Part shown: positions 568 to 35,404 of the stretch, piece by piece
How the letters are laid out: each line of letters starts with the position of its first letter
Numbering within the stretch: the first letter of the stretch is position 1
Assembly (NCBI GenBank): GCA_009103225.1
Contig: RHPI01000773.1
Coordinates: 86,003-150,002, forward strand
Length of the DNA: 64,000 nt
Direction of reading: 5' to 3'
Source: Chlorokybus atmophyticus
Taxonomy: Eukaryota > Plantae > Mesostigma and Chlorokybus algae
Made by a program: the position numbers and the translations under genes
Notes under the pieces: model-generated
What the model saw: the letters and a program-made list of their open reading frames with translations, nothing else
Databases searched by the model: none
Told to the model about the DNA's origin: nothing

Positions 568-2949
568 CTACTTGCACAGCTTGCCAGCGACCCATGCGTT
601 GTTGCTAACATTGAGATCAGCGTCACCATAACACGTGTTGGCACTCCCACAACCAAAGAGCTTGCACACCTGCAGACAATGAGCAACTGTGAGACACAAG
701 TGCTTGCATGCGTGCGTGCGTGCGTGCGCGTCTATGGTGGTGGGGGAGGGGCGTGCATGCGTGCGTACATTGCTGTAGTGTCCGTCGCTGGTGTAGTACG
801 CCCAATGTGTGCATGCGAGGTTGCGCTTGCACTTGTGGCAGCATGTGTCGGCGTCGGGGACGCGGTTGATCCACTTGATGCGGGTCAGCGGGGGAGTCTT
901 CCACAAACCCGTCGACACCGGCTTCGAGCAGAAAGACTTGCACACACGCTCGCCGTTGAGACGCTTCTGCAAAAGGATTTGATACACTAAGTCAGCGAGA
1001 TGCACACACACACACACACACACATGCACTACAGCAATCACACTGACAGTGATGGCAACATACATGTTCAAAGAAGCCATGGTCACAGATGCATTGATAC
1101 CCGCCCGTCACAGGTTGGCATCGGCCGTGGGTGCCGCACGGGTTGGGTTTGCAGACTGCGTGCACACAAAGGTAGTCACAACATTGCAACCTTTGGCAAG
1201 TGACTCATGCAGTCTCACACGCATGCATGTGTCACACTACTCACCGTGACGAGTAGGTGGTGGGGGTGATGATGCTGGCGGTGGGGGTGGCGGCGGGGCT
1301 GATAGCACTGGTGCTGGTGGTGACAGTGCTGGCGGTGGGGGTGGGGGTTGTGTTGGCGGCGGTGGAGGCAGCGGCTGAGCGAGCAGAAGCACAAGAATGA
1401 GTCCATCACAGTTGCATTCAAAACTATAGACACAACCCACCACCAACCCACCTTACATACTCCGGCCCGACACGCGCCGTCCGGGCAGGGCGTCCCATCC
1501 GATTTCCCGAAACAGAACTCTGCTCAGATACATGATACAGAGTCTAAGTCGCGCACACCACACAGAGACGGATGCAACGACCAGAGCACCCACCCACCCA
1601 CCCACCCACGCACCTTGGACGATGACAGTAAACGAGCATGCTGTTTCAAGCACATTGGCCCCCGCTCCATTCTGGAACGTCTCTTGCACGGCAAGTACAC
1701 GCCCTTTGTCGCCGACCGCCGGTGTGAATGTGGCTGTTGTACGCAGCGGTGAAGCCACTCTTATCCCCGCTGTCGGTGTGATATCAAAGACACCATCCGG
1801 TGCAGGTGTGATGGAATAGAGTGGTGTGATTCTGGTAGTGTTGGCCGTGGCGGTGATGCCGAGGGTGAGGACATCCTCCACGGGGACGTTACACTGCACT
1901 CCCGTGGCTTCGCGTGTGCATTGAGGTGGGAGAGGTGTGTCAAAGCTGCACACGGGTGGCTGCGCAGATACACTCACAATCTCCACGATGAAGTCCAGCG
2001 CGTGCATGGCGGGGAGGTTGCCAACATGGTCCTCCTCCACTATCACCTGCACGGCGTAGAGCTGCCCCACCTGGGTGCTGTCTGTGGTCCAATCCAGCGT
2101 GCATGAGGGGGAGACTGTGAGTGTGTCTATTGCGCTCGGGTTGGAGGAGATGTAAGACTCGCTTGTTGCGGCACGTCGACACGTAAAGGAGTCCAGGTCT
2201 GGGTCAAGCACAGGCAACTGGATGGTGTTGTCCTCACTTGGACCAGCAACTTGGATGATGGGAGGGGAGGAGGAGACCACGCCACCAGTGTTGCCATGGT
2301 TCATGTCGATGACGGTTTGGACAAGGAAGGAGCTGTCCGGCGAGTTGGATAAAGTAGAGATGCGGCAACAATCGTTGATGTAGACTGAGTATGGGCCCGG
2401 CCCGCTGAAACTTTTTGTAATCTGTCACAAGAAGTGCAAGTCAGTCTCAGATTAGACTTGAGTCTATGTGTGTGCGTGTATGTGTGTTACCTGGGCCTGG
2501 CCGTCCACAATGTCTCGTGCGGTGTTTGTCCCCGTAACAGCGAGGTTCAAAGAGATAGCTGTGGCAGGAGAGGTGTCGCCAAAGTAGAGCGTTGTAGAGG
2601 TGAAGATGTCGCCATTGGATGGTGGCACCGTGAAGTAATAGCTCAACCTCCAGCTCTGGAGTGTAAGTGTAGCAATACTTGTAAGTGATGCACAGAGGCA
2701 GCATGCGCACGCATTATGTTGGTTGACACGTACCTGGGTGACGGTGATGATGACGTCGTAGGGGCCAGCGTTGGCGCTGGTGTCTTTGCGCCAGGACGTG
2801 AAGCTGTAGCGAAAATGGGTGGCTTGGGCTGTGCCGGCATGGCTGGCCAAAGCGACAAACGCTACAAGCCAACACCATGGCGGTGTTGTTGCTGAAGCTC
2901 TGTCTGACTTCGTCATGCTCATTGCTGCATACACAGAGCGACTTAGCAT
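568..2949 (-). CDS. Multi-exon secreted modular protein: signal peptide, Sib/integrin-beta-like N-terminal region, short Cys motif, Pro-rich linker, EGF-like domain, PAN/Apple-like C-terminal domain
   Basis: Hydrophobic signal WLVAFVALASHAGTAQA is followed by THFRYSFTSWR. The large exon reads INDCCRISTLSNSPDS...PVLDPDLDSFTCR...LYAVQVIVEE, then come EFCFGKSDGTPCPDGACRAG, poly-Pro, CKPNPCGTHGRCQPVTGGYQCICDHGFF and CCHKCKRNLACTHWAYY...CKLFG, with the stop at 568. The splice phases I checked (large exon through the EGF/PAN junction) are consistent GT-AG. The start could instead be 2922 or 2916. Confidence 0.7.
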
Positions 2950-32671: not shown

Positions 32672-35404
32672 ATGGCTGCCTCCACAGCAGTGCTGGCTGC
32701 ACTCTGCCTGCTGCTGCTGACGGCCTCTGGTGGGGTGGCATACAATGCGACGTGCAATTGTGCTGTACTCATGATGCAGATGTGCTGAATTGGGCCTTGT
32801 GTAGGCGTTGAGGTAATATGTTGCTGTTGTTGGTAGCTACCATGCCATAAAAGTTCTCTGTCTGCTTGGCTCGCATACTCAATTGCTTTGTTTGCAGCCA
32901 GTGCGCAGAGTGTGTGGATCAATGAGTTCCACTATGACAACGCTGGCACAGACTCCGGCGAGTTTATTGACATTGGTGCGTGCACATGCATGGGGTTGTG
33001 TTGTGCATGTGACTGGGCTCTGTGCTGCATGCGTGAGCTGCACCTGTGCAGCCATGCCAAGACACATGCTTATGTGCATGCAGGTCCCGCGGGCACGTCT
33101 GCAACGGGCTACAGCATGTATCTGTACAACTGCGCAAACGCAGGGGCTGTCACTTACACTACCGTCTTGTCCTTTACTGGCGCCTTCGCCAACCCATCTG
33201 GTATGCAATGCGGTAGCACGTCCGTGTGTTGGCATTGCTGTCGTGTTTTGTGTGAATGTGCATGCACCCAACGCGCATGTGTTTGTGGAAGTGTGTGTGT
33301 AGCGTATATGCAATGCTATGCATGTGTCTGTGAACCTTCCTTTGCACAGGTGGTTATGGGTTTGCAGTCGTAAACTATCCTGCGGACGGCATACAGAGTG
33401 ATTCGCCAGATGTTTTTGCGCTGGTAGCTAACACCACCGTTGTGCACTTCCTCAGCTATAAGGGCGTGTGTGCACGGGTACATACATGTGCATGTTACAT
33501 GCGCTTTGGTCATGACCATTCCAACGCCAACCTACCGCATGCATGTGGCAGCTTCCAATGGGCCGGCTTCCGGGCTCGCTTCCACGAATATCGGCAACTC
33601 AGAGACCGGCGCAGGAGCCGTGGGCAACTCACTGCAGGTGCGTGTGACTATGCTCGACTATGCTCGAATGTGTGACGCGACTTGGAGTACATGTGGTTGA
33701 AGTGAATGTCAACAACTCGAAAATGACAGTTGAGCGGCTCTGGATGCGCTTCTACTCGTTCATGTGGGCTGCTAATCCTAGGGGCATACCCAACACATCA
33801 GGTGCAGCCAATGTCAACCGCATTCGTAAGGGGTTGATGATGATCGGTCAACCTGTCGGTTGTCAGTTGGTTGAATTGTTGCAAGCATGAAGCAATTGCA
33901 GCAATGCCGTCATATGCGTATGCGTACAGGGAAGTGAACACCGGACAGACCTTCACCCACAGTCCCTCCCCACCACCCTCTCCTCCACCGTCTCCGCCAT
34001 CGCCTCCACCCCGCCCTTCTCCACCCTCGCTACCGTCCCCTCCACCACCCTCTCCTCCGTCACCTCCTCCGCCGTCACCTCCACCACCATCCCTTCCACC
34101 TCCTCCCTCTCCTCCTCCATCCCCTTCACCACCCTCGCCTCCACCGTCACCTCCACCACCCTCTCCTCCCTCTCCTCCGCCGTCGCCACCTCCTCCCTCT
34201 CCTCCATCGTCGCCTCCACCGCCCTCTCCTCCGTCACCTCCACCGCCCTCTTCTCCTCCGTTACTTTCCCCACCGTCTCCATCTCCTCCCCCGCCACCAC
34301 CCTCCCCATCTCCGACTCCTCCCCCTCCCTCTCCTCCCCCACCACCTCCTCCCTCCTCGCCGTCTCCTCCCCCACCCTCACCTCGGCCGTCACCTCCACC
34401 ACCCTCTGCCACCTCCTCCATCACCTCCCCCTTCCTCCCCTCCCTCTCCACCACCCCCTCGGCCGCCACCGCTCTCCGCCGCCACCCAAGTCCTCTCCTC
34501 CACCACCGCCACCCGCCAGTACGTGTTGTTGTTATTGTCATTGTTGTTTTACGATGTTGTCGTGGGTGATGTTGATTACAGCTTGCATCTGCTCACTGAA
34601 TCCGGTGGTCTGGTGCACGTGCAGTTTGCTTTCCAAACCTGTGCGAAAGTCGCGGGACGTGCGTGCCCACTCAAAGCCAGAGCGACTACATTTGCACCTG
34701 CAAGCGTGGATTCTTCCTGGGGGTGAGTTTGCAATCGTGTGCCTGCTTCACGTGCGTGGTATGTGTGTATGAGTCGCAGAGCACGATAATTGAAGAATGT
34801 GTCGGTGTGCAGACGACGGCCAATGGCAAGCCCACCTGCTCGTCATATTGCTCTCAGCCGTATGGCACATACGTGTGGAGGTCGCCACCTCTGCAGCGTT
34901 TCGCCAGCCATAACAACACCGCAAGCGCAGCCGCATGATGCAACAATTACGCACCTAAACTCAGCATTGCTTCTCATAAAGCTTCCATGCGTAACTGCGT
35001 CAACAAGCGTGGCAGTGTGTGCATCAGGTGCACTGCTGACTCGTCATGCAAGTACTGGGCGTACTACACCGGCATGTAATATGCCCTTATCACGGACGCG
35101 GAGGAAACCTACGTCAAGGTAATGTGTGAAAGGAGAGACCCCCCCCTCCCCGGCACACACACACACACACACACACACACACACATACACAGTACCATCC
35201 CCCTTGTATACATACTACCCCATACCGCTTCCATGCTCCTTGCACCACTCACACGTGCACATAAATACTCACTCGCTCCGCAAAAATGCTGTGCAGCCCT
35301 GCAAGTTCTACAGCGCAAGCAACAACCCCAACGCCTGCTATGGCGAGGCGCAGTATAACAAGAAGTCCAGCACCAAGCGGAGGGTCAGCAAGCTGTGTAT
35401 TTGA
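32672..35404 (+). CDS. Secreted modular protein: signal peptide, bacterial-type lamin-tail domain (LTD), (Ser-Pro)n extensin-like linker, EGF-like and PAN/Apple-like domains; contains frameshifts (possible pseudogene or assembly error)
   Basis: MAASTAVLAALCLLLLTAS|ASAQSVWINEFHYDNAGTDSGEFIDI, GPAGTSATGYSMYLYN, YGFAVVNYPADGIQ, VVHFLSYKG, ASNGPASGLASTNIG, SPPPP repeats at 33961-34518, CFPNLCESRGTCVPTQSQSDYICTCKRGFF, PCKFYSASNNPNACYGEAQYNKK...SKLCI*. Frame breaks at ~33751 and ~34405-34485. Confidence 0.65.

Follow-up and report, generated by a model that had tools for sequence, protein, structure and literature searches.

A small Chlorokybus family of predicted secreted proteins with unrelated heads on one proline-rich linker, EGF and PAN-like tail

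Two genes in a 64,000-nt stretch of the Chlorokybus atmophyticus genome (contig RHPI01000773.1, positions 86,003 to 150,002; this whole stretch is called the window below) encode predicted secreted proteins that differ at their N-termini and share a C-terminal tail. Gene A lies on the minus strand, with its coding sequence at 568-2922, and gene B, the exons of which are predicted, lies on the plus strand at 32672-35404. A preliminary description of this DNA had proposed that unrelated heads are joined here to one homologous tail; both genes were found where it had placed them, and every motif it quoted is present in the window. Sequence comparison confirms the observation on the tail, and indicates that a modular family of secreted proteins with swappable heads is real: at least three unrelated heads, namely a SIBA-E_N block, a lamin-tail domain (LTD) and a plant-type LRR, are found on one proline-rich linker/EGF/PAN-like tail. 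The best overall explanation, which we regard as fairly probable, is that Chlorokybus possesses a small family of modular glycoproteins, secreted rather than membrane-bound, in which unrelated heads were joined to an ancestral block of linker and tail.

The homology of the two tails is evident exon by exon, with E-values in single BLASTP comparisons of 2e-8 for the EGF exons, 8e-11 for the exons that follow and 2e-6 for the C-terminal exons. Independently, a hidden Markov model (HMM) of the tail was built solely from two other Chlorokybus proteins, P0002 and P0003 (public gene models, taken as given), and searched against the 2,348 stop-to-stop pieces of the window. It matched the exons of gene A, and then the three tail pieces of gene B colinearly (1.8e-9, 8.3e-6 and 2.5e-4), while the next best match had an E-value of 0.78, and no third copy of the tail was found among these pieces. 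Three introns also coincide between the genes. The first is in phase 1, one codon before the first EGF cysteine, and the second in phase 0, two residues after GFF; these are the matching phases noted in the preliminary description, and to them can be added a third, in phase 0, one residue before the cysteine of C-K-[LF]. In gene A the positions are taken from a spliced transcript contig, and in gene B they are predicted from GT..AG sites and the reading frame.

The EGF domain (PF00008, cut-off 21.5 bits) scores 29.3 bits on the gene A exon, 28.6 bits on the gene B exon and 22.3 bits on P0008, the public protein model of gene A. The full six-cysteine pattern is present, with the sixth cysteine located in the next exon (N-G-x-x-x-C) in both genes. 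For the Cys-rich part beyond it, Pfam matches to PAN/Apple (PF00024, PF14295) fall below threshold on the gene A exon (PAN_4 at 23.2 bits, cut-off 27; PAN_1 at 19.5 bits, cut-off 21.4), reach 15.2 bits on the whole of P0008, and are absent from the gene B exons. A phmmer search with the tail gave an E-value of 6e-13 to P0004, an unrelated protein with eight PAN domains, and hhalign aligned the three tails with the 12 PAN repeats of P0004 and P0006 (95.9%, E 6e-9) over only 29 columns. Among solved structures, a tail profile matched the apple domains of kallikrein weakly (E 0.04-0.08), and its other structure matches were to generic EGF.

When the 66-residue tail exon of gene A was compared with 1.84 billion representative proteins, E-values of 1e-10 or lower were obtained for P0002, P0003 and P0004; P0002, with a Sib-type head, and P0003 were the only family members recovered, beside generic multi-PAN proteins. 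A word search with the tail region returned P0002, P0008 and P0003 only. The head of P0003 (Chrsp124S01853, 358 aa) is an LRR of plant type (LRR_1 at 22.9 bits, cut-off 20.6); a proline stretch of 11 residues follows, and the tail is 68% identical to that of gene A. Among the intact members, tail identity is 68–81% under unrelated heads, and the gene B tail is 33–43% identical to that of gene A. No membrane span, NPxY motif or Y-x-Y motif was found in P0008, P0002 or P0003 (in P0008 no hydrophobic 19-mer after the signal peptide exceeds 1.33), and we infer secretion from the hydrophobic N-termini and the many cysteines. Matches in a protein atlas (scores of 0.76-0.92) serve as leads only. The preliminary description had pictured an exon-shuffling platform, and of this the modular family stands, with its three or more heads on one tail. 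Exon shuffling may be the mechanism, but the EGF exon starts in phase 1 and ends in phase 0 and is not a symmetric cassette, and the phase at the junction of head and linker in gene B is ambiguous. An active platform is a less secure reading, since only a handful of members were recovered and the tails are old, as the divergence between genes A and B indicates.

Gene A is intact and expressed. Its exons are identical to the public model Chrsp38S00427 (P0008, 583 aa), 53–65% of the word content of 500-3100 is present in public runs from two studies, and the spliced gene is seen in transcript contigs of two studies. The match to P0008 shows the window to be Chlorokybus nuclear DNA; a volvocine origin, which SPPPP repeats and GC content had seemed to suggest, was rejected because the best matches were Chlorokybus models. 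One such contig, of 1,957 nt, spans all the exons and eight GT..AG introns. Its blocks on the window are 2734-2924, 2491-2655, 1619-2421, 1452-1521, 1245-1374, 1064-1155, 767-966 and 405-667, with a further jump to 3100; the skipped stretches are all CT..AC on the plus strand, that is GT..AG on the gene strand, and letters that were ambiguous at two exon joints were settled from the window sequence. Since this single contig joins all the exons, head and tail are parts of one gene, which answers, for gene A, the possibility raised in the preliminary description that they might be carried by separate genes.

The exons follow the modules of the protein, which has a hydrophobic N-terminus, the SIBA-E_N domain, about 230 further residues, a four-cysteine unit, a proline-rich linker, the EGF domain and a Cys-rich end. 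A 5' untranslated exon (3100..3138, outer end approximate) is represented by 39 contig letters past the GT..AG joint from 2924 to 3100. The exon with the start codon (2734..2924, ATG at 2920-2922), identical to P0008 residues 1–63, covers the signal peptide and the first part of SIBA-E_N; the middle of the domain lies on 2491..2655, and its end, together with two more Ig-like regions, on the large exon 1614..2421, which ends in phase 1. Between head and linker is a 68-nt exon (1452..1519) for a four-cysteine mini-module, which the preliminary description had missed. The linker exon (1245..1374) starts in phase 0, ends in phase 1 and encodes 43 residues, rich in proline but with few Ser-Pro4 units. 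It is followed by the EGF exon (1064..1155, phase 1 to phase 0) and by the tail exon (769..966, phase 0 at both ends), which carries the sixth EGF cysteine, W-x-T-P-P-L and a PAN-like core, CCxxC...C..W.YY. The last exon (405..669) holds the Cys-rich C-terminus, the stop codon at 568-570 and the 3' untranslated region. All of these exons are placed by the transcript.

The two N-termini are indeed unrelated, as first described. That of gene A matches SIBA-E_N (PF24907) in P0008 at 40.3 bits (gathering cut-off 28.1, E 3.7e-10), where residues 38–157 cover model positions 1–117 of 119; when gene A is scanned exon by exon, just the last 30 model positions score (21 bits). Residues 32–386 of the head align end to end with residues 21–353 of P0009, at 34% identity (E 3e-45). 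P0009 and P0011, the two of the twelve non-Chlorokybus head relatives for which gene context was checked, lie on dense, intron-free, prokaryote-type contigs, and P0013, labeled in its source as a Bacteroidota type IX secretion system (T9SS) protein, has SIBA-E_N together with the second Sib Ig domain (PF24908), Big_9 and He_PIG. The searches for head relatives were length-filtered, and the long Dictyostelium Sib proteins fell outside the filter. In P0009 a Cys-rich DUF4215 repeat follows the Ig block, in the same position as the 68-nt exon of gene A, and the bacterial-type head of gene A may reach through this exon. The four-cysteine unit is also found in the paralogues P0002 and P0001. P0001 (jgi/Chlat1 Chrsp50S06466), the one protein recovered with the largest exon of gene A as query, is 61% identical to it, but its model begins within the head, ends in sequence resembling a translated intron and lacks linker, EGF and PAN; it probably represents a further Sib-type paralogue whose gene model was truncated or wrongly built.

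In gene B, the exons were predicted from GT..AG sites, reading frame and homology, and would encode an LTD head split by introns, a Ser-Pro stalk of about 190 residues and the tail shared with gene A. The start codon and signal peptide are predicted on exon 1 (32672..32729) from the sequence, a GT donor and the frame, and the LTD on exons 2-5 (32898-32975, 33084-33200, 33350-33469 and 33552-33637). Scanned singly, the exons score at most 14.7 bits with Pfam LTD (PF00932, cut-off 34.3), whereas a profile made from eight bacterial LTD domains matches exons 2-5 in order, with E-values of 4.6e-9, 7.9e-5, 2.8e-12 and 2.9e-9. Bacterial genomes (596 Gb) were also scanned for the exon-2 motif, N-E-F-H-Y-D-N, by means of a degenerate 21-nt pattern, and at least 120 loci were recovered, against about 35 chance matches expected by our own estimate; most of these must be true LTDs, since 93 of the 120 also match exon 4. 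At the bacterial loci the counterparts of the four LTD exons are adjacent within one open reading frame (ORF), a few codons apart, at 39–85% identity (exon 2, 56–85%, a range biased by the search motif; exon 3, 39–64%; exons 4 and 5, mostly 45–63%), and the abutment of the same pieces in bacterial ORFs validates the predicted borders of exons 2-5. Among these relatives is an Algoriphagus protein (L012) that scores 44.3 bits with Pfam LTD and carries in addition DUF5689, an endonuclease/exonuclease/phosphatase domain and a T9SS sorting tail. By sequence, two of the three head types, the block of gene A and the LTD of gene B, are bacterial in type, and horizontal acquisition of these heads is plausible; the third head, the LRR of P0003, is plant-type.

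The 3' part of gene B is less regular. Exon 6 (33730..33825) should hold the end of the LTD, but its frame is ambiguous and none reaches significance: five residues, LSGSG, extend the bacterial consensus in one frame, a string F-x-W...T-x-G-A-A-N is read in another, and this suggests a frameshift. The linker exon (33930..34519) is composed of SPPP/SPPPP units; its acceptor is uncertain (33930, 33935 or 33949) and its donor, at 34519/34520, is in phase 1. The EGF exon (34625..34722) starts in phase 1 and ends in phase 0, like that of gene A. The tail exon or exons, at 34813..35118, are homologous to 769-966 of gene A and read in one frame, interrupted by an in-frame TGA (34936-38) and TAA (35077-79), neither of which had been noticed in the preliminary description. 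The last exon (35297..35404), assigned by homology and frame, starts in phase 0 and reads C-K-F-Y...C-Y-G-E-A...K-L-C-I, with its stop at 35402-35404.

These lesions make it probable that the assembled gene B has been truncated or is in decay. The frame of its tail exon, which begins at 34813 and reaches a good donor in phase 0 at 35118, crosses both stops. The TAA sits in the family's frame between the conserved W-A-Y-Y-T and C-K-F-Y pieces, and when all GT/GC..AG combinations were enumerated, none with a GT donor kept both pieces open; the 27 that did so all depend on a GC donor at 35072 and translate a (CA)n microsatellite. For the TGA, the sole intron that would take it out is 84 nt long and has a weak donor, GTTTCG. 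A slightly better than even chance can be given to the view that gene B is a pseudogene or truncated derivative, with the family real and the LTD-on-tail arrangement a relic, a view compatible with the explanation given above for gene A. Besides the two stops, it accounts for an LTD end that is not recovered in any single frame and for a tail that is the most divergent of the family; no B-like protein appeared in the results of the tail searches (1.84 billion representatives, and the word search), and a degenerate partial copy of the gene is found 11 kb downstream, beside a tandem array and assembly gaps. Weighing against decay, the last exon is still open, has kept the conserved cysteines and stops at the position usual in the family, a canonical GT..AG intron at 35076-35296 would still give an open message, ending in a different and unrelated C-terminus, and the stops may be assembly errors or strain variants.

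The family can be compared with several known systems. As in Dictyostelium SibA-E, the first 120 or so mature residues of gene A are a SIBA-E_N domain above the cut-off, but gene A lacks the von Willebrand A domain (no match in P0008 at E <= 10), the membrane span and the NPxY talin-binding tail that define the Sib proteins (PMC9197732). The layout of its head is, overall, closer to that of bacterial surface proteins: it aligns with proteins that combine SIBA-E_N, Ig and DUF4215, where a small Cys-rich unit also follows, just as the LTD exons of gene B match colinearly the bacterial proteins with LTD, DUF5689, endonuclease/exonuclease/phosphatase domain and T9SS tail. Unlike either bacterial group, the algal genes are interrupted by spliceosomal introns and encode a eukaryotic signal peptide together with the Pro/EGF/PAN tail, and they lack a nuclease, Por_Secre_tail and dockerin.

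Among eukaryotic wall proteins, the likeness is to chimeric extensin-like hydroxyproline-rich glycoproteins (HRGPs) such as the volvocine pherophorins and the LRR-extensins (LRX proteins), which are secreted and carry globular domains on a Ser-Pro or proline-rich rod. The SPPP(P) units of gene B resemble such rods, and P0003, like the LRX proteins, pairs a plant-type LRR with a proline-rich stretch. Chimeric rather than classical extensins have been reported in green algae (PMC10762512). In Chlorokybus, however, the rod is an internal spacer (11-190 residues) rather than an anchoring end, the C-terminus is an EGF domain and PAN-like knot that are absent from those families, and there is no sequence relation to pherophorin domains. 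Measured against extensins proper, the linker of gene B has repeated Ser-Pro(3-5) units, but the Y-x-Y motif of tyrosine cross-linking is absent from P0008, P0002 and P0003, and none was seen in the gene B linker.

A further likeness is to the S-domain receptor-like kinases (RLKs) and S-locus glycoproteins, streptophyte extracellular proteins with a Cys-rich PAN domain at the C-terminal end of the ectodomain (PMC10868138). In contrast to these, Pfam scans of P0008, P0002 and P0003 found no bulb-lectin domain, S-locus domain or kinase, a membrane span is likewise absent, and the matches listed for the tail among solved structures included no S-domain RLK chain. Many S-domain receptor ectodomains also have an EGF-like module beside PAN. 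Each of these comparisons finds defining features lacking, which sets the Chlorokybus family apart from Sib receptors, S-domain receptors and classical extensins; its nearest kind is the chimeric proline-rich glycoproteins.

According to the explanation we favor, genes A and B would belong to a family found, in the searches made, solely in Chlorokybus. In each member, a signal peptide would be followed by an N-terminal head that varies, by a linker rich in proline (about 11 to 190 residues long) and by a C-terminal cassette of roughly 130 residues that is conserved: one EGF domain, a conserved stretch reading W-x-x-P-P-L and, reaching to the C-terminus, a PAN/Apple-like disulphide knot. Unrelated heads would have been joined to the ancestral block, the introns of which have kept their positions. 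Hydroxylation and O-glycosylation could turn the linker into a stiff rod, the EGF/PAN knob might bind a matrix carbohydrate or matrix protein, or pair with itself, and so keep the protein in place within the thin wall or sheath, and the head would be held outward as a binding or adhesive end. A bolder version, which seems rather unlikely, is that the 3' block of rod, EGF and knot, with its fixed phases, acted as a docking cassette that repeatedly captured foreign extracellular domains, including bacterial adhesin and LTD modules, so that surface domains of bacterial origin would have been built into the matrix of the alga itself.

Several points weigh against the favored explanation. The census of members comes from one short single-sequence query and length-limited word searches, so that relatives in other algae could be missed. 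The PAN assignment lies under the Pfam cut-offs and covers just 29 columns in hhalign, the AlphaFold models are unusable (pLDDT of 49.6 for the tail and 33.5 for the gene A head), and the lesions in the predicted exons of gene B mean that the LTD-headed member may be dead. It is also a guess which end anchors and which binds. We consider it unlikely that the polarity is reversed, with the conserved EGF/PAN end acting as the ligand or sugar binder (a lectin-like cap or dimerization module, as in S-domain receptor ectodomains) and the heads attaching or targeting the protein. PAN/Apple modules do act as binding modules in other proteins. In keeping with such a role, the tail is the part conserved, at 68–81% identity, between proteins with unrelated heads, and PAN occurs in the ectodomains of S-domain RLKs (PMC10868138). 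The LRR and Ig-like heads are generic binders too, so the sequence does not decide the polarity, and the C-terminal position of the tail and the lack of a membrane anchor fit either arrangement.

Two other accounts can be set aside. EGF and PAN are widespread and the Pfam PAN matches are weak, but independent assembly of these common domain types, with no shared ancestral cassette, is highly improbable given that the likeness of A and B goes beyond the domain consensus (N-G-x-x-x-C-x-S-x-C-S-x-P, W-x-x-P-P-L, C-Y-G-x-A-x-x-N, and K-L-C-x before the stop), that the whole tail is colinear with a profile made from other genes, and that three introns coincide in position and phase. Equally hard to credit is a wrong merger of separate head and tail genes, or contamination as the source of the bacterial-type heads, as the single 1,957-nt contig with its eight GT..AG introns covers all the exons of gene A, spliceosomal introns interrupt the head exons of A and (as predicted) of B, and frame and phases connect the LTD, linker and EGF exons of gene B.

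Chlorokybus and Mesostigma form the deepest branch of the lineage leading to land plants. The proteins of the thin wall and thick sheath of Chlorokybus are almost unknown (PMC10762512), and the family provides concrete candidates for matrix proteins, with gene A expressed. It offers a clean case of unrelated heads on one tail, with 68% identity between tails under heads that share nothing, and of intron-bearing algal genes, one of them expressed, the heads of which are closest to bacterial surface proteins. If these heads are transfers, they show how foreign extracellular domains become wired into a eukaryotic matrix; if the tail anchors or pairs, it could be a handle with which to study the surfaces of streptophyte algae or to display proteins on them; and domain capture by a docking cassette, if true, would represent a way in which transferred genes were domesticated at the base of the streptophytes. 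Neither chimeric proline-rich glycoproteins nor the transfer of bacterial genes into streptophyte algae is new, and in kind the family is no surprise, being a variant of the algal chimeric proline-rich glycoproteins. Literature searches found no paper that describes a head-swapping family in Chlorokybus.

Elsewhere in the window, there are two assembly gaps (36996-37056 and 39437-39979), and the region from 38000 to 44000, between gene B and a tandem array, is low in GC (38–49%) and without convincing ORFs. Microsatellites of the (CA)n type occur at 35154-35191, 24110-24183 and 1003-1029, within introns of A and B and elsewhere; the T-H-T-H strings in the ORF lists derive from them and so are not coding. 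A possible third family member near 40-45 kb was rejected, as only a degenerate copy of the gene B linker region is present there, with no tail. This partial copy (44590..45037, plus strand) comprises intron 5, the start of exon 6, intron 6 and the Ser-Pro linker of gene B, at 73–86% identity by blastn, with the exon 6 body of about 100 nt deleted, and it lies directly before the array. The array (45040-50850, with a single N at 45039) repeats a 501-bp unit about 12 times, at 99–100% identity and with one spacing of 504. No ORF of 300 aa or more crosses it, and it could be either a very recent expansion or an assembly artefact.

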